Source of the DNA: Eukaryota sp. TZLM1-RC
Taxonomy: Eukaryota; Protista; Metamonada: BaSk clade
Direction: 5' to 3'
Assembly: GCA_040285825.1 (NCBI GenBank)
Contig: JAUPSS010000002.1
Location: forward strand, 1,612,001-1,676,000
DNA: 64,000 bases
The notes below the pieces were generated by a model. It was not told the origin of the DNA, searched no databases, and saw only the letters and a program-made list of their open reading frames with translations. The position numbers were made by a program, and so were the translations under genes. Positions 5,002 to 62,200 of this stretch are shown here, one piece after another (positions within the stretch are counted from its first letter, which is position 1; every line of letters begins with the position of its first letter).

Positions 5002-5094
5002 GTGTTGGCGCCTTTAGGCTTACATAGAATAGGGGTAAAATAAATCAACTTTATCTCATTCATTGTATGTTAAGTTCACGACTTAAGGCAACAC
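5002..5094. mobile_element. Short TIR-bounded (MITE-like) element, copy 1
   Basis: gtgttggcgcctttaggctta...aaatcaacttt...cttaaggcaacac; termini GTGTTG/CAACAC; two other copies at 8922 and 11983. Confidence 0.6.
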
Positions 5095-5596
5095 TTGGTG
5101 CTTTAACCATCATGTGATCGTGGTACATATTGTTCGATCTAAGATATGGCTCGCGACTTTGTCAATTGCATGAATTGGTCAGGAGCCATAAATTCCCTGT
5201 GATCCAATAAACACTTTCTAACTCATTAACGCAATCCCCATTAGTTGAAACCATTTTATTGATCTTTGCTCTGGCTCTGTGATTGGAAGTTGCTTGTGCT
5301 CTTCAATTGCATTAATTTCGGGATTGTTTTTATTAATCTATGGTACTCTGTTTGTTTCCCCTAAAAAAATGAAAGATGACCAAAGATGAGCAAAAAATTG
5401 TAAATAATCGAGATGTTTCACTGAGATATTCGATCGAACAAAGAAAATCCCTGTAAATCAAGTTGCTGAAAATATTCCGGGCCAAATTGTATAAATGTTT
5501 TGAATTGTAAATTGAATATAATTACTCCTATCAAAATTGTATAGATGTTTTGTTTCAAGTCTTTGTCAAACTTTCAACTCTAATACATTTAAGCTG

Positions 5597-19271: not shown

Positions 19272-20045
19272 AAATGTATTTATTGAATTTGCACACTTAA
19301 TTAAATTAACTCATAACTAATGGTACGACTATCATTGAACCAAGATTTTCTCTACAAAATCTTGATCTGCTTGCTGTCTAGCTAAAGCTTCTCTAATTCG
19401 ATTGAAAAACCGAGGTAATCTATTAATAATGGCAAATTGAATCCGTGAACGCCATAAAAAATATCAAATCTTTTCATTGTTTTTTCTTGCACCATTTTTT
19501 GGAAGTCATCCAAAAAAGTTTCTGCTTCAACTGATAATCTTCCATTTATCGAAAATGGGAAAGCAATAAAAACCAGCTGTGTATTTCTCTCGGCATTAGC
19601 CTCTTCAATATCTTTATCATATTTTCTATGTTTCTCTTTTGCTTTAAAATCATGAGCAGTCACAAGATTAAGTTTTCTTCTGTGAACCAAAGTATCATTT
19701 GCAACATTACATGAGACAAAGTCAACAATAGCTTCAGAATTATCAATCCAATCACAGTATACATCACCTCTATCGTCAGAACCAAAATTATTCAGAGAAA
19801 GTGTTTCCTTCAGCAGGGGCTCTTTGATGCACGATATCCTTGCAGTTTGTGCCATATTGAAAACAGTGTCTCTAACAGCATCATGTAATGAAGAACAATA
19901 AGTTATCAATTCAGAGCAATTCAGAGCATGGCGCAAAGTGAGATGAGGGGAATTCGAACAAATACATTTTTTTGATAATAATTGATTAATTGGAATATTC
20001 AAATATAATCTCATTTTTGTTACAAATGCTTCATTAGTAGCACAC
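19272..20045 (-). mobile_element. Family A retrotransposon 5'-truncated copy with 3' UTR
   Basis: CCHC, DRGDVYCD, VDFV, KEKHRKY, AFPFSINGRLS; 3' UTR ends in AATAAA. Confidence 0.88.
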
Positions 20046-39146: not shown

Positions 39147-39150
39147 ACTG

Positions 39151-39171
39151 ACAGATGTTGTCTATAACAAT
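39151..39171 (-). promoter_or_regulatory. ATG-proximal conserved motif upstream of the hSac2 gene
   Basis: Sense ATTGTTATAGACAACATCTGT, 4 nt before the ATG; 20/21 identical to 55014-55034. Confidence 0.7.
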
Positions 39172-44841: not shown

Positions 44842-45905
44842 TTTATTGAACTTCCAAAGTAAACAAAATAAACTCAAAATTAATGGGACTAGAAATTTTC
44901 TGACACCTAATTACTGCCTCATAAATCACACCAATCATTTTTGGATCTCTGATGACATTTTTTAGACTGTTCTTTAAACCACCCATAGGGTTTATGTTTA
45001 ACAGTTTCCATGAATTGGTCATTGTTAAAGAAATTATATAACTAATGAGACGAAATTCATTGAACCAAGATTTCCTCTACAAAATGTTGATCTGCTTGCT
45101 GTTTAGCTAAAGCTTCTCTTATTCGATTGAAAAACCGAGGCAATCTTTTGATAATGGCAAACTGAATTAGAGAGCGCCATAAAAAAATATCAAGTCTTTT
45201 TATTGTTTATTCTTGAATCAGTTATTGGAAATCATTCAAAAAAGTTTCCGCTTCTACTAATAGTCTTTTGTTTATAGAAAATAGGAAAGCAATGAACACA
45301 AGTGGTCCATTTTTATCAGCATTAGTTTCTGCGATATTTTTGTCATATTTTCTATGTTATTCTTTGGTCTTAAATTCAAGAGCATCTACAGAAATAAGTT
45401 CTCTTCTTTGAACCAAAGTGTCATTTGCAACATTACAGAAGACAAAGTCAACAATTTCCTCAAAGTTCTCAATCCAATCACAGTATACATCACCTCTATC
45501 ATCAGAACCAAAATTATTCAATAACAATGTTCCCTTCAGCAGAGGCTCTTTGATACACGATATTCTTACAGTTTGTGCCATATTGAAAACAGTGTCTCTA
45601 ACAGCATCATGTAATGAAGAACGATAAGTTATCAATATAGAACAATTCAGAGCATGGCGCAAAGTGGGTTGAGGTGAATTCGAACAAATACATTTTTCTT
45701 TTAATAGTAATTGATTAAAGGGAATATTCAAATATAATATCATTTTTTGTTACAAACGCTTCATTATTAGAACACAGTCCAAATCTTCGTGGCACAATGG
45801 TCACAAACATAGAAGAATCTGATGACTGATTTTCACAAACACCTTTTTCCAATAATAATGAGTGCAGATCTTGATTTAAAACAGCCGAGCTGCATATATT
45901 TTTAC
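44842..45905 (-). mobile_element. Family A 5'-truncated copy with ~150-bp insert in its 3' UTR
   Basis: CCHC/RLE ORF 45357-45743; the 3' UTR is split between ~44842-44890 and ~45040. Confidence 0.8.
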
Positions 45906-46169
45906 AAAGACCGCTTGCTGTTGGAGTATTACTTTATTGATAGTTGTACATAATTTGACAAAGCAATTTTTTATTCATTGTAAAACTTTGGGAATTTTTC
46001 CATTTTGTCCCAAAGGTTTAAATTCTTAAAGTTTCTACAAATACGGTATTGAAATTTTTCGTTAAAATTTGATTGACAATTTGTCTGGTTAGGATACGGT
46101 ACCCTTCCATCATCATAATACACCTTTCAAATCAACAGTTAACAACAATTAACTTTGGCGGAGGTCGTG

Positions 46170-46462
46170 TACTTATTGCTTTCCCATTTTCGATAAACGG
46201 AAGACTATCAGTAGGAGCAGGAACTGTTTTGAATGATTTCCAAAAAATGTTTCAAGAAAAAACAATGAAAAGATTTGATATTTTTTTATGGCGCTCTCGG
46301 ATTCAATTTGTTGTTAATAGATTACCTCGGTTTTTCAATCAAATTAGAGAAGCTTTAGCTAGACAGCAAGCATATCAAGATTTTGTAGAGGAAATCTTGG
46401 TTCATTGAATTTTGTCCCATTAGTTATGAATTAATTTTATTAAGTGTGCAAGATGAATAAAA
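46170..46462 (+). mobile_element. Family A 3'-end fragment (plus strand)
   Basis: IAFPFSINGRLS...DFVEEILVH*, 3' UTR and aataaa followed by A residues. Confidence 0.85.
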
Positions 46463-46481
46463 AAATCGATCCCCACCTTGT

Positions 46482-46830
46482 TGGAAGTGTTTCTGGATTT
46501 CTTTCAAAAATCTCGTTCTTCGAAATATGACAGATTAGGGAAAAAGGCTGTCACCATTTCAAACCCAAATAATAGCTTCTTCACCATTAACCATGTGTTT
46601 AATTGTAACGATAAATACCATTATATTTTTGTCTCCTAATAAAAAAATCAACTTTGTTCCGTCGCAGGACTCGGCGATCTTCATAAGTTAGTAACTGTTT
46701 AAGGACTGATCTGCGAACAAAATCTGAATCATTAGTTTCTTCTTCGGTCGGTACCCACTGCATGGGCTATAATATGCATCCCTTTTGAAATAGAAAATGA
46801 AATTCTATTCCGTCAAAATAGTTTATTAAT
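46482..46830 (-). pseudogene. Degenerate Fanzor fragment (paralogue of 55219-55986)
   Basis: Minus-strand DRRVLRRNKVDFFIRRQK / IMVFIVTIKHMVNGEEAIIWV*NGD...RFLKEIQKHF aligns with the 55 kb copy; shared cgcaggactcggcgatct. Confidence 0.75.
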
Positions 46831-47046
46831 AATTTTTTTAATGATCTGGGCAAAATATGTTAGAAAAGATTAAGTGAGTTTTATTTCGAGAGAAAAACCA
46901 CTCAACTGACTACAAAAATGGGCATTATAAGTATTAAGCTCCTTGTTACTTATCAAAATTAAATATTCATAGTTGGAGTCTTGGTTTAGAATACCTAGGA
47001 GTACAGTGAGTCTGAAGTATTGATTGTAGAGAAATTTCCTCTTACT

Positions 47047-47748
47047 TCACACATGTGGAGAATGAGCATAAATGGTGGGATATTCAATCACTCGTAGTGA
47101 CTCAAGCATTGAATTAAACTCAATAGTTGGATTAAGATCAATATAAACCTTGTTTTGGTTTTGTGTTTCATCTAAAATCACAAACTTAAGGAGTTCCAAC
47201 CGTGCAACATGACTAGCACCTATTCTGATTCTCAGAGAGGTGTCAACCATGGCTGCTTCCAATGCCGACAAAAGAGATTTATTGGATGGAACCATGATGG
47301 TTGTTGAGATTGATCCTACAAACACAAGTTCCACCTTCCATAGGATAACTCCTCCTTTTATGAGTTTGGATGTATTGTTTTCGGCCTTTGTCATTCCCGG
47401 ACTAAGAAGAATAAGATCAATACCATTCTCGAGTGCAACTTTTTGCATTGATTTCCTATTTGATAACAAAGTCTTTGGTTTTGAGGAACTCAGAAGCCGT
47501 CTTCCGAAAAACGAAGTTGAACATGTAGTTGACATAACATTTTCTAAGAAGACATAATCATTGTGCAAAACATCCTCATTGAAATTGACCAATGGTACAA
47601 AGTCAGAAGGAGCTCGTACCCCATTACAATTAAACGAGGTCTTATGTGCATTAACACAAGGTAAAGAACATGTATGAGACTCACAAGACGGACACTTATA
47701 CTTGGCACCTTTTCCACAGATGATGCATTTTGAGGAAGAGAGTACCAT
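47047..47748 (-). CDS. BCD1: Box C/D snoRNP assembly factor Bcd1/ZNHIT6
   Basis: zf-HIT CIIC...KYKCPSC...TCSLPCVNAHK..FNCNG, DYVFLE, PGMTKAENN, LWKVE, IEYPTI. Confidence 0.88.
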   Translation of the reverse strand: MVLSSSKCIICGKGAKYKCPSCESHTCSLPCVNAHKTSFNCNGVRAPSDFVPLVNFNEDVLHNDYVFLENVMSTTCSTSFFGRRLLSSSKPKTLLSNRKSMQKVALENGIDLILLSPGMTKAENNTSKLIKGGVILWKVELVFVGSISTTIMVPSNKSLLSALEAAMVDTSLRIRIGASHVARLELLKFVILDETQNQNKVYIDLNPTIEFNSMLESLRVIEYPTIYAHSPHV

Positions 47749-47772: not shown

Positions 47773-48028
47773 AAGCAACCGTCCGCTGTACAGTGTAGTA
47801 TAAAGCAGTTGTATAGAGAGAACTCACCAAATAAATTATGTTATTCTTCACATAAAATATAATATTCTTATAGTTAGGCTCTGTTATTGTTGCTGACAAA
47901 TACCAACGAACAATTCAATATCCAAGTAAGACATTCCTCTATTTATTTGTTTACTGATGTACTCTATATAATGTCGTTTTTTTTATATAATCTTAATGTT
48001 TTTTATTTAACAGTATAATACTGCATAA

Positions 48029-48670
48029 TTTATTGAATTTGCACACTTGATTAAATTAAATCATAACTAATGGGACGACTATCATTAAACCAAGATTTCC
48101 TCTACAAAATCTTGATTTGCTTGCTGTCTAGCTAAAGCTTCTCTAATTCGATTGAAAAACCGCGGTAATCTATTAATAATGGCAAATTGAATCCGTGAAC
48201 GCCATAAAAAAATATCAAATCTTTTCATTGTTTTTTCTTTCACCATTTTTTGGAAGTCATCCAAAAAAGTTTCTGCTTCAACTGATAATCTTCCATTTAT
48301 CGAAAATGGAAAAGCAATAAAAACCAGCTGTGTATTTCTATCGATATTTGCATCTTCAATTTCTTTATCATATTTTCTATGTTTTTCTTTTGCTTTAAAA
48401 TCCAGAGCAGCCACAGGATTAAGTTTTCTTCTGTGAACCAAAGTATCGTTTGCAACATTACATGAGACAAAGTCAACAATAGCTTCAGAATTATCAATCC
48501 AATCACAGTATACATCACCTCTATCATCAGAACCAAAATTATTCAGAGAAAGTGTTTCTTTCAGCAGGGGCTCTTTGATACACGATATCCTTGCAGTTTG
48601 TGCCATATTGAAAACAGTGTCTCTAACAGCATCATGTAATGAAGAACGATAAGTTATCAATTTAGAGCAA
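48029..48670 (-). mobile_element. Family A 5'-truncated copy with intact RLE coding region
   Basis: RSSLHDAVRD...DRGD...DFVEEILV* and 3' UTR. Confidence 0.88.
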
Positions 48671-49559
48671 TTATAATTGAGTATATTGAATTTCAAATTA
48701 TTTCTTTACCATTGTTTTAGCATTTGTAGCTTATATAGACGCCTTCTGGACTCAGTCAATCATAGTAGTTAATATTTGCATGCACTTTGGTGGTTGATTA
48801 TCATTGACGAATATTAGAAACAGTGTTTTTTTTATTGAATAAATAGAATAGATAGATCATTTCATCGGAAATATAAATGTTCAACAATAAAATAAAATAT
48901 TCTATTTATTTTTGTATTTTTGTATTATTAATTCTATTTATTTTTTATTATTATCTATTTATTCTTATTTATTCAAGTAAGGAGTATTAGAGTTGACTCT
49001 TGGCAATCACATAGTTTGTTGCTAAAATTTATCAACTGGTAAGGATGAAAATTCATGTGAAAACATATGTATATCCCATTAAAAAGTTCTTAGTACCATT
49101 ACCAACTACTCTAAGCCAACTAATAAGAGCCCCAAACCAAACTAAATATTTCTTTCTTGAATTATAATCAATTTGTAAAAAAGTAATGGTTTCTGAAGTG
49201 TTGATCATTGACGAATAATCTACATCAGCAAATTGTCTTGTTGTTATGAAAAGATTTGTTACTAATGGTACTTTCAGAATAGCTTCAAACAATGACAATT
49301 GCAAACCTAGTCACAATGACCTTAGCAAGATACGTGATAGATACGTGATAGAAATCAGCCGGCTCATTTGCCTAAGCTTGCAATTGCTGAGGTCAGAATG
49401 AGTGGTAATGAAAGGCCTCAGTATGTGTGTAGTAGATAACTTTTGTAATTATTCCGCGCGAAAATGGTTCGTACTTCTGGAGAATTTCGGATTTTACAGC
49501 TAATTCATGTATTGTAAATAATTCACATTAATTACTGGGAATCAAACCTAATACTCATT

Positions 49560-50474: not shown

Positions 50475-53345
50475 ACGTGCAAAAGTGTTGTTCCAATTAA
50501 TAGGATGTAAAATGTTCCAAATTTTTTGATCATGCTTATCTTAGTCCACATTATGGCGGTTAAGCTTGGACAAACGCTTCTATTCTTACTTCATGTGCTT
50601 TTATCGGTGTAATGCAGGAATGCAATTGTTGAGTTTTCTGAAAGATTTGCCGATTGGGAAGATTTATTGATGACAACGCAAAGTTGTACTGTTTTTGCTT
50701 TAAATGATGAAATTTCACAAACTGATGTAGAAAAATGGAGTCGATGCTTTCCCCAATCATTCAATGGTAATATTCCAGAAAAAAATTTTTAAATTTAAAT
50801 TACATTCTGCGAACATTACTGAAACGATTGACTAGAATATATGAAAATGATCTTTATAATAATAAATGCACCTCGGCCGTTTTAAATCAAGATCTTCACT
50901 CATTGTTATTGGAAAAGGATGTTTGTGAAAACCAGTCATCAGATTCATCACTGTTTGTAACCATTGTACCACGAAGGTCTGGACTGTGTGTTAATCATGA
51001 AGCGTTTGTAACAAAAATGAGATTATATCTGAATAGCCTTATTAATCAATTATTATCAAAAGAACAATGTATTTATTCAAATTCACCACAGCTCACTTTG
51101 CGTCATGGTCTGAATTGTTCTATATTGATAACTTATCGTTCTTCATTACATGATGCTGTTAGAGACACTGTTTTCAATATGGCACAAACTGTAAGAATAT
51201 CGTGTATCAAAGAGCCTCTGCTGAAGGGAACACTTTTATTGAATAATTTTGGTTCTGATGATAGAGGTGATGTATACTGTGATTAGATTGATAATTCTGA
51301 AGCTGTTGTTGACTTTGTTCCTGTAAGTGCTCTCGAATTTAAGGCCGACAAAAAACATAGATAATGCGGTAAAGTTATTGAAAAAGCTAATGCTGATAGA
51401 AATAGACCAATTTTTTATTGCTTTCCTATTTTCGATAAACGGAAGATTATCAGCAGAAGCGGAAACTTTTTTGAATGATTTCCAAAAAATGGTTCAAAAA
51501 AAACAATGAAAAAATTTGATATTTTTAATGACGCTCTCGGATTCAGTTTGCCGTTAATAATAGATTACCTCCGTTCTTCAATCGAATTGGAGAAGCTTTA
51601 GCTAGACAGCAAGCAGATCAAGATTTTGTAGAGGAAATCTTGGTTCAATGAATTTAGTCCTGATAGTTATGACTTTATTTTGTTAAGATCACAAGTTCAA
51701 TAAATTAAGAACCTTTGGTTGGTTAAGAAAAAATACCACTTTTGCAAATGAAACCCCTTCCATGACTTGATTTCGAGTCTAGAAACATTGCCACCACGAC
51801 AGAAACAACCGAAGCAACCAGACCAAAAAATGGAATAGAAAGAGGTTTTTCGCAGCGAGAGTAGTACTGACCGAATGGAAAGTTAACAATGACGAGAAAG
51901 ACAGATCCATAGATTCTGAGTGAAGAGATCCAAAGACAAACCAGTAAGAACACTATACTGTAATTGAAACTGTAATAGAGATGACATCATTCAACAGCAA
52001 GGTCAACAACATTGTTGACAGTGTTTCAAATGAAAGTGATGAAGATAGTCAAAAGTGAGGGAGATCATTACCAAGTTGAAGGTTGAAAACCTGCCAAAAT
52101 AGGCCACCAGAAGTCGAAAATGGTGGTGACAAGTGAAAAATTTGATAAAGGCTCATTATTCTCGTTGCATGTCAGACGCACTTTTTGAACCAAAGATGAT
52201 TCAGGATTCAGGATCCCTTACTGTCAATCTACTGGAAAGATTGTTACAAATTCTGTTTCTCATATTTTTACTTAAAAAAAATAAAAAAATTGTGGCAGCT
52301 CTTATCTTATTTCTTTGAAACAGGAAATTGAAACTCTTTCACCCAATATTTGGTCTAAATGTTTCCCCTCTGATATTGTGGAACTTCCTCCAAGAAACTT
52401 GCTCTCCTTACCACTGACTTTTGCAAAATGGCAGAAAAAAATCTTGAAAGTTTTAGAAAACTTGGATTATATTGTACGTTTTAGCTTGGCTAAAGAAAAA
52501 AATCCCGTTTTTGCAGATTTTTTGATTGATCTTGAAGACAGTTGCTCAAGTAGCCTAATCTCCCAAATTCCCAACATTTTGGCCTTCTACTTAATGATCA
52601 CCAATGGACCACTGCAATGAGAATGAGATGTTTTCTATGGCCTTGTTCTTTACCAAATGATTTAATTTGTCGCTGCAAGAGTGTTGTTATGCTTTCCCAT
52701 ATTTTAAACTGTAAGTATTTCATAACTTATCGCTCAATGGTTCATGACTCAGCTCGTGATCAATTATATGCCATGTGCAAAAGTTTCAATATAGAGGCAT
52801 TTATTGAACCTTTAGTTCGTAAGTTATCTCCAGATCAAACTGATGATTCCTTTGGTAAAAGAAGGGCAGATTTAGTAGCTCCAGGGATCGATGCTGTTCT
52901 CAATGTTGTGGAAGTTGTCTCAGTAGATGTCTGCAAAAATTCTGTTGCTCGTGTGGTGTATTCCGCTGATTCGCCGCTATCTAACGCCGAAAACAGGAAA
53001 TACAAAAATATGACGTACCATTGGCACAATTAGGTAGAGTCGAACATTTGAAATACCAGTTTGTGCCGTTTGCAATTTCTCTTTTGGCAATATTGGACCT
53101 TCAGGGTTGCACTTTTTTGAAAATTTCAAAAAAGTTTAACTAAATAGATCTTGTAAAAAGATGAATTCCGCTTTCTGGTTAAATAGAATTGTTTTTTCGC
53201 ATAATGAAATCTATTCCAACAATGATTTCTAAAGCTCTTTTGGCTATTGGTGTAGAATATGAACGAAATGCTGTCAGTGGGTTTAGTAATAGCGATGCTT
53301 GTTTGGAGGATATTGAATCTTGGACAGATTTTTAGTTCAATAAAA
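50475..53345 (+). repeat. Left arm of ~2.9-kb inverted duplication (A fragment, non-TE spacer 51705-52295, C fragment)
   Basis: Reverse complement of ~58125-61008; the same ORFs occur on opposite strands (MFLLVCLWISS, MKQEIETLSP, MLSNLRPTK). Confidence 0.9.
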
Positions 53346-54373: not shown

Positions 54374-55009
54374 TCATGCCACCGTTAAATCATCATTGAA
54401 ATACAAACAAATACATGGAATTGCTTCTTCCGATGGCAGAGAAGCCTCAGAGAAAACAAGCTCTATGTCCTCGATTCCATTACCATCTAAAGTCTTCTCC
54501 ATGTCCAACTCCTTACCACAGTGCTTCCATGTGTAAGAAAGACAGTGTGAGTTGTGTAGAAAGAGCCTCCTGGCAATGTCTATAAGTGTTTCCTCTGCGG
54601 CTACCTCCAGAGTCGTTCTATCGTGAGTCAACATATTAAAGAAGTTGACATGACGGGACCGACTGGTTAGCTGACCTATCATAAGATCTTGGTTCTTCCA
54701 CCAGGGGTTGGGATGGGGTTGCTCCAATAATTTCCCAGTGGAATCATGTAAATGAAGCATCCATAGCTGATCAGGGGTCAGAGGGACAGTTTTAAGTGTA
54801 TCAGGGTGTGTGTAGGTACGAAAACCGAACGATGTTTTGTTGAACCAATGTGAAATATCACTCCCTGCTGCACCGAGTAAGGATGCTGTTAATAGAGGAG
54901 GCTCCTGATGAATTAATGGTGTAATATCAAGTACACTGCCAAAGATACAAACCCAAGCACTGTCGCGGTGATTGTGCTTGGCCAACTCAGATGGTAGAAT
55001 GTAAACCAT
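54374..55009 (-). CDS. CYB5D1: Cytochrome b5 domain-containing protein 1 (flagellar radial-spoke protein)
   Basis: ELAKHN...WV.IFG.V.DIT, AG.DISHWF, PWW, NMLT, SYTWK, LDMEKTL..NGI.D, LYFNDDLT. Confidence 0.92.
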   Translation of the reverse strand: MVYILPSELAKHNHRDSAWVCIFGSVLDITPLIHQEPPLLTASLLGAAGSDISHWFNKTSFGFRTYTHPDTLKTVPLTPDQLWMLHLHDSTGKLLEQPHPNPWWKNQDLMIGQLTSRSRHVNFFNMLTHDRTTLEVAAEETLIDIARRLFLHNSHCLSYTWKHCGKELDMEKTLDGNGIEDIELVFSEASLPSEEAIPCICLYFNDDLTVA

Positions 55010-55013
55010 TGTT

Positions 55014-55034
55014 ACAGATATTGTCTATAACAAT
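55014..55034 (-). promoter_or_regulatory. ATG-proximal conserved motif upstream of CYB5D1
   Basis: Sense ATTGTTATAGACAATATCTGT-AACA-ATG. Confidence 0.7.
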
Positions 55035-55039
55035 AAATA

Positions 55040-55260
55040 AGACACAGATGTATTGTGAATTTCTATCAAAACACACTTCTGGCTTTTGACCAATTCATGT
55101 AATCTTGATAGACGTTAAGCATACTTTAGATCCATCACTATATGATGTCACAATCAAATGACAGTTAAAGCAGCAACATCACAATACGCGTACAGGTACG
55201 CAATACATGGAAAAACACTTATCTATGGGGTCTCCGGAACGCCTCAGGTCTTTCATTGTA
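55040..55260 (-). ncRNA. Candidate Fanzor omegaRNA region (boundaries unknown)
   Basis: Directly 3' of the Fanzor stop; short hairpins gcgtac-NN-gtacgc (55188-55201), tgtca..tgaca (55146-55163), catca..tgatg (55133-55147). Confidence 0.3.
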
Positions 55261-55986
55261 GTAGTGCTCACTTATGGAAATCTCCAGTTTGTTTCTGGAA
55301 GCTGAGATGTCCCTCGACCAGAGTGTCTGACATTGAGGACAAACAAACTTATCATTGTTCACCCTCCCATCATCGTGATACAACTTTTGATTGAATACCT
55401 TACAGCAATTCGTTTTGGCAGATGTGTAGAATTCATCTCCTTTAGGCTTCACATATGTAAAATGTTTCTGAATCTCCTTCAAAAAGCGCTTCCTTGGGGT
55501 TTTCACAGATTGTCTTGATGGCCCATCACCTCCACTGCCAAACCAAAGTATGGTTTCTCTTCCATTAGCCATTAGTTTAATTTTTTCAATAAATCCCATT
55601 ATTTTTTGCCTTTTTATAAAAAAATCAAACTTGATGCGGCGCAGGACTCGGCGATCTCCATTTATCAGCAGTTGGTCTAATAAAGTTCTCGGACGGAAGT
55701 CTAGAAGCCTTTGGGATAAGGATTAATCTGAGAAAGGATCATCTTCATGAACCTTCCAATACGTTGCAATATACTGAGAATCAAGGTCAATTATACTTTC
55801 CCCTAATACAATTTTCAAAACTCTTTTTAATTTGCATGGATCATAATAATTTGTGTAAATACTATAAGTATCAACAACATATCGTCCAGCGATTAAAATT
55901 TTCAAGTGTTTTTGATTCATTTCTATCAAATTTGAATTATAATATTGAATCCATTCACTAGCATCGATTTCACCCTTAAAAAGTCC
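55219..55986 (-). pseudogene. Fanzor (TnpB-like RNA-guided endonuclease), C-terminal half; one in-frame stop at 55723-55725
   Basis: RRIKFDFFIKRQK, ILWFGSGG, P.KRFLKEI, RuvC-II DEFYTS, TNCC...CPQC zinc module, RuvC-III WSRDISASRN, terminal RPEAFRR. Confidence 0.85.
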
Positions 55987-57269
55987 TTATTGTCAGAACG
56001 TTTCATAACATGTGGGATGTCAAATTCTACAATATTGAAACCACATATTAGGTGAAGATTGCAAGTTTCGAGAATGTTTTTTAAACGAACTTCAAGATAT
56101 TGATTGAACTTAAAATAAATTTAAAAATAAATTGAGTGAGTTTTTTTACGTACCACATACTACTTGATTAACGTTGAAATCTGGGCCAAATGTCGAATGT
56201 GTTGACACCATGTGTTCAAAGATGTCTTGAATAGTTGTGTAGGGATACTTGTTTGAATTGTTTCAATGATCAATTACCATTGCAAGAACACCGCATGTTG
56301 GATTTCACAATTTTCTTGCAAATTGTGCCATAATCTCAATCGTTTTGAATTGATAACTTTCGTTCTTCTTGAAATAATGCCTTTGGATCAGAATCTGAAG
56401 CACATAACATGGGTTGCTTAATAGGTCGTTGCGAGGCGGAGGTTTGCCCATTAGCTCGACGTGAAGCCATTATAGTGGAATAGAATAGGGGTGCAGGGAA
56501 AATTCGTTGTTAGAGACATTTGTCCCATGTACCTTGTACTGTTACCACTAAAATACAGTACAATTTACTTTTGGTTAAATGTCATACAATCGATCTCCCT
56601 CCACCTATTCACGTTTTTGATTATGTTTTTACCCGAGCTTCAAATTACGGTATGCTGCAGAACCATACATTAGATATTAGTCTACATTAAAAATTATCAT
56701 CAATAATCTATATATGGTATTTCAAGCAGAAGTTCTACAAACTACTAGTCTATATTAAAATCAACATTAATAAAATTCATGGACACATACAGTACACTTG
56801 TATCGACCATGGACATGATTTCCATTGGAGTTTTTACAAGGGTACCATAAAGTAGTATTAAGAAAGTGGTCTACGGAAGAAGACATACAGTGCTTTGATT
56901 GACGTTTCCAAGCTGAAGCCCAGTGTCTCATTCACTGTTGCCACGTCAAATCACGCACCGGGTTCATACTCGGGGGTCCGTTAGCAAAAACTGATGCACC
57001 CTTTGACACTTCATTTCAAATTTCGTGTTTCTTTGACACATCATTATTTTCCATTTTTGGAAATTATTCCAAACATCTCCTGTTTTTGATGATAGTCTTC
57101 CGTTTAAAGAAAATGGGACAGCAATAATAACAAAATAATAATAGCAAAATCTAGTCATTGTTAGCATAAACCAGGTTTTGTTAATGTGGATTAAGATATA
57201 TGCCTTATATATATGTTGATGTACACAAAAATTGTGTGGAATTTCAAGATTTCTCATAGAATTATATTA

Positions 57270-57975
57270 TTTATTGAACTTGCACACTTAATAAATAAAT
57301 AAATAAATAAATAATGGGACGACTATCATTGAACCAAGATTTCCTCTACAAAATCTTGATCTGTTTGCTGTCTAGCTAAAGCTTCTCTTATTCGATTGAA
57401 AAACCGAGCTAATCTATTAACAACAAATTGAATCCGAGAACGCCATAAAAAATGTCAAATCTTTTCATTGTTTTACTTGAACCATATTTTGGAAGTCATT
57501 CAAAAAAAATTCTGCTTCATCTGATAATCTTCCATTTATCGAAAATGGAAAAACAATAAAAACCAGCTGTGTATTTCTATCGGCATTAGCCTCTTCAATA
57601 TCTTTATAATATTTTCTATGTTTCTCTTTTGCTTTAAAATCAAGAGCAGTCACAGGATTAAGTTTTCTTCTGTGAACCAAAGTGTCATTTGCAACATTAC
57701 AGGAGACAAAATCAACAACAGCTTCAGAATTATCAATCAAATCACAGTATACATCACCTCTATCATCAGAACCAAAATTATTCAATGACAGTGTCTCCTT
57801 CAGCAGAGGCTCTTTGATACACGAAATTCTTGCAGTTTGTGCCATATTGAAAACAGTGTCTCTGACAGCATCATGTAGTGAAGAACGATAAGTTATCAAT
57901 TTAGAACAATTCAGAGCATGGCGCAAAGTGGGTTGAGATGAATTCGAACATATACATTTTTCTTTTGATAATAAT
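57270..57975 (-). mobile_element. Family A 5'-truncated copy
   Basis: RHALNC...DRGDVYCD...FPFSINGRLS and 3' UTR. Confidence 0.88.
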
Positions 57976-58109
57976 TAACGAACTTAGCAATTCATTATCA
58001 GAGGATTGATGATTTAAAATGTTATTTTTATCATCAACTCTACAACAATATTCCATTTTGCTTGTTAACCTTCCTACAAGATCACAAAAACAAAGATTTA
58101 ATTCAATCT

Positions 58110-59175
58110 GTTTTTTTCAACTGGAATATTTATTGAAATAAAAAAACCCATCTAGAATTCAATATCCTCCAAACAAGCGTCACTATTACAAAACCTACTC
58201 ACAGCATTTCGTTCATATTCTACACCAATAGCTAAAAGTGCCTTTGAAATCATTGTTGGAATAGACTTGAAAATGCAGAAAAAACAATTCTATTTAACCA
58301 GAAAGTGGAGTTCATTGTTTTACCAGACCTATTCAGTAACACTTTTTTGAAATTGTCAAAAAAGTGCAACCCTGAAGGTACAATATTGCCAAAAAGAGAA
58401 ATTGCAAACGGCACAAACTGATATTTCACATGTTCCACTCTACCTAACTGTGCCAAAGGTTCTTCATATTTTTTTATCTTCTTTTTTTCGGCGTTAGATA
58501 ACGGCTGCTCAGCGGAATACACTAAACGAGCAGCAGAATTTTTGCAAACATCAACTGAGACAACATCTACAACATTGAGAACACCATCGATCCCTGGAGC
58601 TACTAAATCTGCCCTTCTTTTACCAAAGGAATCATCAGTTTGATCTGAAGATAGCTTACGTACTAATGGCTCAATAAATGCCGCTATATTGAAACTTTTG
58701 CACATGGCATCACGAGCTGAGTCATGAACAATTGAGCGATAAGTTATGAAATACTTACAGTTTAAAATATGGGAAAGCATAACAACACTCTTGCAGCGAC
58801 AAATTAAATCATTTGGTAAAGAACAAGGGCATAGAAAACATCTCATTCTCATTGCAGTGGTCCATTGGTGATCATTAAGTAGAAGGCCAAAATGTTGGGA
58901 ATTTGGGAGATTAGGCTACTTGAGCAACTGTCTTCAAGATCAATCAAAAAGTTTGCAAAAACAGGATTTTTTTCTTTAGCCAAGCTAAAACGTACAACAT
59001 AATCCAAGTTTTCTAAAACTTTCAAGATTTTTTTCTGCCATTTTGCAAAAGTCAGTGGTAAGGAGAGCAAGCTTCTTGGAGGAAGTTCCACAATATCAGA
59101 GGGGAAACATTTAGACCAAATATTGGGTGAAAGGGTTTCAATTTCCTGTTTCAAAGAAATAAGATAAGAGCTGCC
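58110..59175 (-). mobile_element. Family C 3' part (CCHC and RLE) with T tract
   Basis: CRC..H..NC, RSIVHD, IEP, KRRADLV...VDV, K..KY, FVPFAISLFG. Confidence 0.88.
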
Positions 59176-59775
59176 ACAATTTTTTTATTTTTTTAAGTAA
59201 AAATATGAGAAACAGAATTTGTAACAATCTTTCCAGTAGATTGACAGTAAGGGATCCTGAATCCTGAATCATCTTTGGTTCAAAAAGTGCGTCTGACATG
59301 CAACGAGAATAATGAGCCTATTTATCAAATTTTTCACTTGTCACCACCATTTTCGACTTCTGGTGGCCTATTTTGGCAGGTTTTCAACCTTCAACTTGGT
59401 AATGATCTCCCTCACTTTTGACTATCTTCATCACTTCATTTTTCTATCTTCATTTGAAACACTGTCAACAATGTTGTTGACCTTGCTGTTGAATGATGTC
59501 ATCTCTATTACAGTTTCAATTACAGTATAGTGTTCTTACTGGTTTGTCTTTGGATCTCTTCACTCAGAATCTGTGGATCTGTCTTTCTCGTCATTGTTAA
59601 CTTTCCATTCGGTCAGTACTACTCTCGCTGCGAAAAACCTCTTTCTATTCCATTTTTTGGTCTGGTTGCTTCGGTTGTTTCTGTCGTGGTGGCAATGTTT
59701 CTAGACTCGAAATCAAGTCATGGAAGGGGTTTCATTTGCAAAAGTGGTATTTTTTCTTAACCAACCAAAGGTTCT

Positions 59776-62200
59776 TAATTTATTGAACTTGTGATCTTAA
59801 CAAAATAAAGTCATAACTATCAGGACTAAATTCATTGAACCAAGATTTCCTCTAGAAAATCTTGATCTGCTTGCTGTCTAGCTAAAGCTTCTCCAATTCG
59901 ATTGAAGAACGGAGGTAATCTATTATTAACGGCAAACTGAATCCGAGAGCGTCATTAAAAATATCAAATTTTTTCATTGTTTTTTTTGAACCATTTTTTG
60001 GAAATCATTCAAAAAAGTTTCCGCTTCTGCTAATAATCTTCCGTTTATCGAAAATAGGAAAGCAATAAAAAATTGGTCTATTTCTATCAGCATTAGCTTT
60101 TTCAATAACTTTACCGCATGATCTATGTTTTTTGTCGGCCTTAAATTCGAGAGCACTTACAGGAACAAAGTCAACAACAGCTTCAGAATTATCAATCTAA
60201 TCACAGTATACATCACCTCTATCATCAGAACCAAAATTATTCAATAAAAGTGTTCCCTTCAGCAGAGGCTCTTTGATACACGATATTCTTACAGTTTGTG
60301 CCATATTGAAAACAGTGTCTCTAACAGCATCATGTAATGAAGAACGATAAGTTATCAATATAGAACAATTCAGACCATGACGCAAAGTGAGCTGTGGTGA
60401 ATTTGAATAAATGCATTGTTCTTTTGATAATAATTGATTAATAAGGCTATTCAGATATAATCTCATTTTTGTTACAAACGCTTCATGATTAACACACAGT
60501 CCAGACCTTCGTGGTACAATGGTTACAAACAGTGATGAATCTGATGACTGGTTTTCACAAACATCCTTTTCAAATAACAATGAGTGAAGATCTTGATTTA
60601 AAACGGCCGAGGTGCATTTATTATTATAAAGATCATTTTCATATATTCTAGTCAATCGTTTCAGTAATGTTCGCAGAATGTAATTTAAATTTAAAAAATT
60701 CTTTTCTGGAATATTACCATTGAATGAATGGGGAAAGCATCGACTCCATTTTTCTACATCAGTTTGTGAAATTTCATCATTTAAAGCAAAAACAGTACAA
60801 CTTTGCGTTGTCATCAATAAATCTTCCCAATCGGCAAATCTTTCAGACAACTCAAAAATTGCATTCCTGCATTACACCGATAAAAGCACATGAAGTAAGA
60901 ATAGAAGCGTTTGTCCAAGCTTAACCGCCATAATGTGGACTAAGATAAGCATGATCAGGAATTTGGAACATTTTACATCCTATTAATTGGAACAACACTT
61001 TTGCACGTAATTCATTGAACTTCTGGGCCAAAGGCCTAGTGACAAGAGGATTTGTAGATCGAATTATAGGATTAAAGTTGGAACTAAAACACAGTCTTAT
61101 AATGGTAAATTTGATATGTTTTTGTATATCTAAAGTCATCATTCGGTCAATATTTTCGGAAATTGAGTTCAAATTTTGAAACAATTCTTTGGTAATTTCA
61201 TCATTATTTCCTAAAAACGAACCCAAATGACGAATAGCATCAATTGAATATAATTTGGCTTGAATTTCAATACCATCAACTATTGTAGAAACTGGAGAAT
61301 TCGAAAGTAAAACACATTTCAGTAAATTAAGTTGGAGGCCAATTTTGTTAAATAGTTCTTTGAAACATACAGTTGCTTCGCTGGCAATCGTTAAGTCACC
61401 TATAAGAACAACATCATCCTTATAAGCAATCATCGTTAAAGAAGGAAACATTGTTTGAATTTGTAATAAAATTGGATGAATGGCCAGACAAAACAAAAAG
61501 AGGTCCTAACGGATCTTCTTGTTTAAAGGAGCACAAAAACCAAAGAATTCCCAGAGAAAATTGATAGCATATTTTCCTTTACATAATTGATCCAAAAATC
61601 TGTTATAAACAAAAGCAAATTCATTGCATTTCGACAGATGTATTTCTTCGGGGATTTTTATGGGAGGGTGGCAATTGTCTTCTATTCTACATTTCAAGCA
61701 TCGATCTGCAGTTTTACCTTTTTGGTTTTTTCTGAAAGAAACACCACAATTGCTGCAAAATTTATGCTTGATACGATTGTTTGCTGGTTTTACAACAAGT
61801 TGTGGAGAATTATTGATTGATTTTCCTTCAGATTCAATTCTTCTAGTAAATTTTCTCCTGCACTTTTTTTCAGAATTTGGAACGTCATTGTTTTCCACAT
61901 TGGGACATGTTCGAGCATAATGTCCCTGTTCTCGGCAGTTAGAACAGTTGTGAAGGTAATCTTTACTTGCTACAACATTTTCACAAATTTCTTGATCAGA
62001 AAATTATTTGTTTAAAAATGAAGAGGGAAGAGGGCGGTGAGGAGAAGTGGAAAGGACATCATCAACAACCTGTGTTCGTTGGTTCTTTCTTTTGATTCTA
62101 TTGAAAACAGAAACAGATTCAAGCAAGACTAAGAAAGAGTAGAAACTAAGTAAAAAACTGAAGTAAGACGGATTTTTCGTAGAGGAGGGTGAAAAAAAAG
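59776..62200 (-). mobile_element. Family A copy retaining both ends, with an internal deletion of most of the RT N-terminal half
   Basis: 5' end (T tract then cctcctctac) matches 27800-27827; knuckle CSNCREQGHYARTC; junction near 61515; possible degenerate TSD aaggttct (59768) / aacgttct (62201). Confidence 0.85.

Follow-up and report, generated by a model that had tools for sequence, protein, structure and literature searches.

The minus-strand sequence at 55054-55701 of the 64,000-nt stretch of Skoliomonas litria DNA analysed here (the window) is best explained, with a high degree of probability, as a dead, front-truncated Fanzor1 copy whose right end is complete, the open frame upstream of it being a separate and older relic. 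The copy would derive from a 2.34-kb mobile element of this species that carries a Fanzor1 gene only. The locus itself is ordinary, one of the many dead transposon relics in the genome. It serves as a clean data point on a Fanzor1 clade absent from the literature searched, fixes the exact right terminus of one subfamily (subfamily A), and gives one more dated and lineage-specific example of a Fanzor right end lying just upstream of a host start codon. The features of the locus, all on the minus strand, are the following.

54374-55009, minus strand: CYB5D1-like gene, intact, 211 aa, with a Cyt-b5 domain; same-orientation downstream neighbour of the relic
55010-55053, minus strand: 44-nt flank between the right end and the ATG of the CYB5D1-like gene, with a near-palindromic motif at 55014-55026
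55054-55701, minus strand: whole Fanzor1 relic (subfamily A block), 94-95% identical by blastn to L003 5423-6074, L004 4558-5208 and L005 4904-5555
55054-55218, minus strand: complete 165-nt right end after the stop codon, with the same terminal base in four copies and a syntax common to five lineages
55219-55701, minus strand: truncated coding part, the last 160 codons plus the stop codon (55219-55221), family-profile positions 436-595 of 599
55231-55251, minus strand: RPEAFRR tail, from the translation of the minus-strand frame
55291-55317, minus strand: SRDISASRN, from the same translation
55309-55311, minus strand: RuvC-III Asp codon (D of SRDISAS), equivalent to SpuFz1 D606 in the profile alignment to 8gkh; found in 28 of 28 relatives
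55330-55413, minus strand: zinc-ribbon (TNB) module, TNCC...CPQC; Pfam PF07282, with Cys columns invariant in the family
55420-55437, minus strand: DEFYTS, from the translation
55432-55434, minus strand: RuvC-II Glu codon (E of DEFYTS), equivalent to SpuFz1 E541 in the profile alignment to 8gkh; invariant in 28 of 28 relatives
55618-55641, minus strand: RRIKFDFF, from the translation, same frame, upstream of the listed ORF
55702-55986, minus strand: extension past the TAA at 55723-55725; not Fanzor, without a match to family members, family profile or Pfam, and probably an exonuclease-like relic
55929-56120, minus strand: frame-shifted piece with a motif like ExoII of family-B DNA polymerases, weak matches only

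Identity of the coding remnant

The minus-strand translation contains the 126-aa ORF (55219-55599) that an earlier note on this DNA had described, with all four of its motifs in place. The frame of this ORF matches the Cas12f1-like TNB family of Pfam (PF07282) with an E value of 5.4e-7 and 30.1 bits, against a cut-off of 26.3, and the minus-strand piece 55222-55722 matches the family profile, built from full-length relatives, at E 2e-69. Judged by these two sequence scores, the motif-bearing ORF is far beyond chance. The profile is an alignment of 28 full-length relatives with 599 positions, the consensus of which reads GIDPG..NL.G, DEFxTS..C.CC, CPxC...W.RDINASRN and RP..F.R. The catalytic triad is kept across the family, with the RuvC-I Asp in 26 of the 28 members and the RuvC-II Glu and RuvC-III Asp in all of them.

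When compared with PDB, the family profile aligned over the full length of SpuFz1 (8gkh; E 3e-43), PpFz1 (1e-32) and GtFz1 (2e-30), while Fanzor2 (mimivirus; ApmFz2) reached 1e-10 and bacterial TnpB about 1e-4 to 4e-3. Searches of the PDB sequences by phmmer with the 167-aa and 64-aa pieces returned nothing useful, and only the family profile succeeded. The profile alignment places the Glu of DExxTS on SpuFz1 E541, the Asp of RD on D606 and the Asp of IDPN on D383, the active-site residues located at two magnesium ions in SpuFz1 (PMC10432273). The closest full-length relative, P0061 (609 aa), with which the window piece shares 91-92% identity across the last 155 residues, was modelled by AlphaFold2 with a mean pLDDT of 75; in a Foldseek search with this model, SpuFz, PpFz and GtFz took ranks 1-7. 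By profile and predicted fold, window 55054-55701 is thus assigned as a Fanzor1 remnant, Fanzor1 being ahead of both Fanzor2 and TnpB. The earlier note had read the order of the motifs as the C-terminal signature of Fanzor1 and the ORF as a Fanzor1 remnant, and had proposed a profile and structure comparison. Both comparisons match Fanzor1 strongly, the profile against PDB with SpuFz1 over its full length and Foldseek with the same three Fanzor1 structures in front, and the Glu and Asp of the signature fall on E541 and D606.

Extent and truncation of the copy

The listed ORF is the ATG-started subset of the truncated coding part, and the Met of IMGF at which it opens is an ordinary internal residue, common to the sister copies. 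The homology of the DNA to three copies from the same genome (L003, L004 and L005) spans 55701 to 55051-55054 in blastn, with nothing beyond. Upstream of the position equivalent to 55701, the three sister copies stay mutually alike and the window diverges exactly there; two of them, L003 and L005, run 1.7 kb further upstream to a common left end. The same boundary is obtained at the protein level with every relative, and only residues 98-254 of the X-joined read-through 55986-55222 align with the family profile, at positions 436-595. The missing Fanzor front is absent from the whole window, as searched in six frames with 11 full-length relatives and the family profile. Beyond the relic, that search gave only a second decayed copy at 46100-46790.

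What is present in the relic comprises the helix before RuvC-II, the RuvC-II Glu, the zinc ribbon, the RuvC-III Asp and the RPxxFxR tail. The WED, REC and RuvC-I parts, corresponding to the front 73% of the gene, are missing. The RuvC triad is incomplete because the copy begins at profile position 436: the Glu and the second Asp are there and the RuvC-I segment is gone. Family members have their RuvC-I about 65 residues ahead of the point where the window homology begins, with recognisable sequence between. As read from its sequence, the window locus is a fragment of a Fanzor1 member and not a working member. In the absence of WED, REC and RuvC-I, the copy can neither bind a guide-target duplex nor cut DNA, and since it has no left end, no TAM can be read from it. 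The inactivity suspected in the earlier note therefore stands on stronger ground, RuvC-I having been lost with the front 73% and not mutated.

Decay of the window copy and its sisters

Relative to the consensus of the sister copies, the window copy carries 12 private substitutions in 480 coding bases, 10 of them residue-changing, together with a private 3-nt deletion and five private substitutions in the 168-nt tail. The rate of private substitution is 2.5% in the coding part versus 3.0% in the non-coding tail, and the 160 Fanzor codons contain no stop or frameshift. The equal rates and the excess of replacements indicate that the coding part is under no protein-level constraint. In the GenBank annotation, no gene is called between the CYB5D1-like gene and 57465.

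None of the four subfamily A copies seen (window, L003, L004 and L005) is intact. L004 is front-truncated too and L005 is frame-shifted, while in L003 a private 6-nt deletion takes out exactly the Ile-Asp of RuvC-I and a 2-nt deletion is found near the C-terminus. P0061, the only full-length gene model of subfamily A, is without the RuvC-I Asp (AIDPN changed to ATN; L003 5186-5195). AIDPN is kept in L004 and L005, so that the loss of this Asp belongs to one copy and not to subfamily A.

The upstream frame and rival readings

The earlier note had followed the Fanzor frame upstream, past one TAA, to 55986. The TAA at 55723-55725 and the open frame beyond it are as described; the Fanzor assignment of this extension does not hold, since the homology starts at 55701 and 55702-55986 is not Fanzor. 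The TAA falls outside the Fanzor homology, and an assembly error at that codon would thus have no bearing on the Fanzor part. An open run of 87 codons is unremarkable, the window containing 100 such runs. Part of the upstream sequence resembles a polymerase-associated exonuclease. The piece at 55929-56120 gave Pfam DNA_pol_B_exo1 at E 0.004, below the cut-off, three PHROG polymerase/exonuclease families at E 0.005-0.009 and T4-like phage DNA polymerases by tblastn at E 0.04, and all of these matches rest on the same 30 residues. The decayed, frame-shifted stretch at 55929-56300 on the minus strand, co-oriented with and directly upstream of the Fanzor relic, shows motifs like those of ExoI and ExoII. 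The stretch from 55702 to about 56300 is interrupted by four or more stops or frameshifts within roughly 190 codons, and the upstream pieces found no match among the Skoliomonas proteins and loci compared. On the basis of these matches, the upstream stretch seems to be what is left of a PolB-type exonuclease, older than the Fanzor and separate from it; this is a lead and not a result. If the origin were purely independent, one would not expect the exonuclease-like relic to lie, as it does, right beside the Fanzor fragment with orientation and frame in common.

Two other accounts of the junction at 55701 have been considered. One takes the whole frame to 55986 as a single longer Fanzor pseudogene, cut by the TAA (maybe an assembly error) and with a degenerate RuvC-I inside. 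The frame is indeed open on both sides of the TAA, and one tblastn alignment, with P0007, reached 55803; according to the profile search and the closer relatives, that alignment is a gapped over-extension. In the profile search, the X-joined read-through has no aligned residue ahead of 98, the 87-aa piece matches no relative, and the closest copies part from the window exactly at 55701 while remaining alike among themselves. A RuvC-I inside the extension would also have to be reconciled with the family, where about 65 residues of recognisable sequence separate RuvC-I from the point at which the homology starts. This account is very improbable. The other treats the exonuclease-like sequence (about 55726-56300) as part, together with the Fanzor fragment, of one composite relic, left by an exonuclease-Fanzor element that lost its Fanzor front by internal deletion. 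In its favour, the two parts are co-oriented and 55726-55986 lies in the Fanzor frame; the ExoII-like motif, 300 nt upstream, drew matches from three libraries, and a domain of this type beginning there would reach its end near 55700. Against it, the two parts differ in age, the roughly 190 exonuclease-like codons having four or more stops or frameshifts and the 160 Fanzor codons none, with a private divergence of only 2.5%. Moreover, the Fanzor fragment is 94-95% identical to elements that have a canonical Fanzor N-terminus and no exonuclease, and the upstream pieces lack any counterpart among the Skoliomonas proteins and loci compared. A composite origin is therefore considered unlikely, if clearly less so than the longer pseudogene.

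A further account concerns the coding part alone, in which the 126-aa ATG-started ORF would be a retained mini-protein, consisting of the zinc ribbon and the C-terminal half of RuvC, with a function of its own. The frame is intact through 160 codons, and the genome annotation includes several short models of a similar kind (118-220 aa). The pattern of substitution speaks otherwise, with 10 of the 12 private changes altering the residue at a rate equal to that of the non-coding tail. The GenBank annotation, for which RNA-seq was used, does not list the ORF as a gene, and half a RuvC fold cannot be catalytic. A retained mini-protein is hardly credible, and the least probable of the readings considered. 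The truncated, dead Fanzor1 copy beside a separate older relic remains the preferred explanation.

The element and its family in Skoliomonas

The full subfamily A element, measured from the common left to the common right end in L003 and L005, is 2.34 kb long. A single Fanzor gene of about 1.9 kb is preceded by 266 nt and followed by 168 nt, and no second gene was found inside the element, neither a transposase nor a TnpA partner. The gene of P0061 takes 1902 nt for 609 aa, and a gap of about 72 nt in its tblastn alignment is consistent with an intron.

TZLM1-RC, the source of the window, is Skoliomonas litria, and GEM-RC1 and TZLM3-RCL are two further Skoliomonas strains (PMC11316075). The locus is carried by a eukaryotic 3.95-Mb contig of S. 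litria, and dozens of annotated copies are present in the genome. The family is nuclear-encoded in a eukaryote and multi-copy, with eukaryotic gene features. In Eukaryota sp. TZLM1-RC it amounts to at least 16 clusters and more than 80 annotated gene models, in addition to short fragments, which bears out the multiple Fanzor copies postulated in the earlier note. An exhaustive search with the stop-free 167-aa piece, run against 1.84 billion cluster representatives, returned 52 matches. All 12 of those below E 1e-10 are hypothetical proteins of TZLM1-RC, GEM-RC1 and TZLM3-RCL, and the next relatives are metagenome proteins with 22-38% identity. The suggestion of a lineage proper to this protist group is borne out by the origin of these 12 matches in three Skoliomonas strains. 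By sequence similarity, the close relatives of the family are confined to Skoliomonas and are annotated as hypothetical only.

The Skoliomonas genome paper makes no mention of TnpB or Fanzor (PMC11316075). In the literature search, no paper combined Fanzor with Metamonada, the papers listed for Skoliomonas or metamonads being without Fanzor, and the sole pairing of Fanzor with Trichomonas was an unrelated review of AlphaFold 3. According to Saito et al., Fanzor1 hosts include fungi, protists, arthropods, plants and giant viruses (PMC10432273). Fanzor1 itself is a known kind, and the host lineage appears to be new.

Several other Fanzor genes of Skoliomonas deserve mention. Two subfamily B elements, 98% identical, are arranged head to head about 1.9 kb apart (L001 1-1728 and 3601-5983). 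In TZLM3-RCL, a Fanzor1 of 775 aa (P0068, RCL1_000147, from a cluster of 24) begins with the last part of a Ulp1/C48 protease domain, matched by Pfam at residues 6-34 (E 0.027) and containing a Cys motif of the QPDSYNCG type, so that Skoliomonas Fanzor genes differ in their front modules. The same strain has a long Fanzor1 gene at L009 8081-10633, with at least 851 aa in one open frame and a TNB match at E 1e-7, which lies 2.4 kb downstream of the CYB5D1 orthologue and is about 26% identical to the family of the window relic.

The right end, a candidate omegaRNA scaffold

The right end of the window copy is made up of the box AUGUAUUG, a hairpin, the 5' strand UGUGA, two hairpin modules, GAAAUUC and the 3' strand UCACA, and its last letters are GAAATTCACA in all four subfamily A copies. 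The comparison of right ends took in subfamilies A, B and C of S. litria together with a GEM-RC1 locus and a TZLM3-RCL locus, five lineages with only 40-70% identity between their proteins. The syntax of the tail is kept in each of the five. It opens with a box AYGUWWUK a few bases past the stop codon, followed by a hairpin the stem of which differs from lineage to lineage (GCGUA/UACGC, GCC/GGC, GGCC/GGCC, GGACC/GGUCU and CCAAGG/CCUUGG). Then comes a short 5' strand (UGUGA, CUGUGA, CUGAGAA, UGUGGU or UGUG), and after it variable hairpins, GAAAWWC and the matching 3' strand, which forms the very end of the element. In the closing helix, two pairs have changed on both sides between lineages in a compensatory manner.

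The syntax was read from folds of the single sequences. Cross-lineage alignment of right ends by MAFFT and RNAalifold put the 5' strands out of register and led to no consensus structure, and in subfamily A the 168-nt fold offers an alternative pairing of the 3' end near the stop codon. Rfam had no match in window 54800-56600, an nhmmer search of the window with right ends from the other lineages was negative, and two full-length elements showed no terminal inverted repeats.

All five private substitutions in the tail of the window copy leave the predicted fold intact, and two of them, at 55100 and 55073, form a compensatory change from a G-C to an A-U pair. The predicted fold of the non-coding right end is maintained, in contrast to the drifting protein part. 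By analogy with the biology of TnpB and Fanzor (PMC10432273), the right end is most likely an omegaRNA scaffold, and the guide would begin in the flank. An intact copy would have its right end transcribed as the scaffold, the 3' strand UCACA would close the helix, and the host DNA directly past UCACA would serve as guide. In the relic the scaffold appears structurally intact, and it may still yield an omegaRNA-like transcript or serve in the upstream leader of CYB5D1.

The CYB5D1-like neighbour and right ends near start codons

In other protists, the product of 54374-55009 has full-length relatives about 210 aa long; these and its Cyt-b5 domain by Pfam fit CYB5D1 and sustain the adjacency to this gene that the earlier note had pointed out. 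The near-palindromic motif at 55014-55026, in the 44-nt flank and belonging to the CYB5D1-like gene, resembles a motif at 39147-39171. By analogy with TnpB and Fanzor, the first 15-20 nt of this flank would be the guide. In GEM-RC1 and TZLM3-RCL, the CYB5D1-like orthologues have a divergent neighbour 103 and 20 nt upstream, respectively, and no Fanzor there. The lack of a Fanzor at these orthologous loci of two sister strains indicates that the insertion is specific to the S. litria line, in which it arose upstream of, and co-oriented with, the CYB5D1-like gene.

Further right ends lie close to start codons. At L003, L004 and L006, they end 12, 23 and 28 nt before annotated start codons. In TZLM3-RCL, a Fanzor right end (…AAAAACACAG; L011 3280-3392) ends 5 nt short of the ATG of a PDCD2_C gene, so that right ends docked on start codons are not confined to S. 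litria. Altogether, right ends lie 5-44 nt upstream of start codons, in the orientation of the gene, in four of seven S. litria cases and in one from TZLM3-RCL, a sample that is not an unbiased one.

The right end of the relic might not be inert, either as a 'ghost' omegaRNA used in trans by an intact Fanzor1 or as a promoter or 5' leader of CYB5D1. This is an unlikely idea, placed slightly above the composite relic in likelihood. In the ghost version, the guide may, by analogy, read into the CYB5D1 leader. Either use, if true, would fit a Skoliomonas-wide habit of right ends near start codons. What Fanzors do for or to their hosts has been left open by Saito et al. (PMC10432273). If right ends act as guide-RNA genes or leaders, a compact free-living metamonad would be a convenient system in which to study the role of Fanzors in their hosts.

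Comparison with known systems

The best-matching characterised relative of the family is SpuFz1 (8GKH; PMC10432273), to which it aligns over the full length at E 3e-43 and which is also the top fold match. Both have the same active-site layout (IDPN Asp, DExxTS Glu and RD Asp), a zinc ribbon and the RPxxFxR tail, and the Skoliomonas element resembles Spu-1 in being Fanzor-only, without a transposase inside. The two differ in that identity is only about 12% in the structural alignment and the host is a metamonad and not a fungus. Spu-1 has 30-nt inverted repeats, whereas none were seen in the Skoliomonas elements, and unlike SpuFz1 the window copy consists of the last 27% of the protein only.

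In the 'ghost' loci of Spu-1, described from S. punctatus, the omegaRNA is present and the Fanzor ORF absent (PMC10432273). RNAs from these loci supported cleavage by a Fanzor supplied in trans (PMC10432273). The window relic is similar in that a right-end, omegaRNA-like module persists at a locus without a working nuclease gene. The ghost loci are about 550 nt long, retain both inverted repeats and number 134 copies, whereas the window relic is a simple 5' truncation with 160 codons and no left end.

With TnpB of IS200/IS605 (ISDra2; 8BF8, 8H1J), the family shares the RuvC and zinc-ribbon core and elements without terminal inverted repeats. TnpB has its guide RNA encoded at the right end of the element, with the guide in the flank, and the same layout is proposed by analogy for the Skoliomonas family. 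The match to TnpB is far weaker, however (E about 4e-3 against 3e-43 for Fanzor1), and unlike TnpB the Skoliomonas family has a putative intron, resides in a 3.9-Mb eukaryotic contig and lacks a TnpA partner.

Other relics and repeats in the window

Two more Fanzor relics are found in the window. The C-terminal relic at 46100-46790 (minus strand) is more decayed and frame-shifted, and starts near the same point of the protein (about residue 437 of P0061). It is located directly behind a zf-HIT-like ORF (47046-47741) and is interrupted at 46173-46464 by a copy of the repeat present at 57264-57976. The third relic, at 5092-5214 on the plus strand and possibly from 4959, consists of a right end only, about 70% identical to that of subfamily A (nhmmer E 1.9e-13), with no detectable coding part upstream.

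An inverted duplication of about 2.8 kb (50520-53333 versus 58142-60964; 90-100% complementary in blocks) brackets a 4.8-kb segment containing a NEPRO-like gene, the CYB5D1-like gene and the Fanzor relic. The 57264-57976 repeat recurs in at least 10 other places (e.g., 19277-19983, 48025-48672 and 45026-45712) with 75-93% identity. ORFs of this type (e.g., 57465-57926 and 58250-58852) show a Cys/His cluster followed by a RADLV...D.V pattern and have no Pfam match; by eye, they resemble the restriction-like endonuclease end of site-specific non-LTR retrotransposons.
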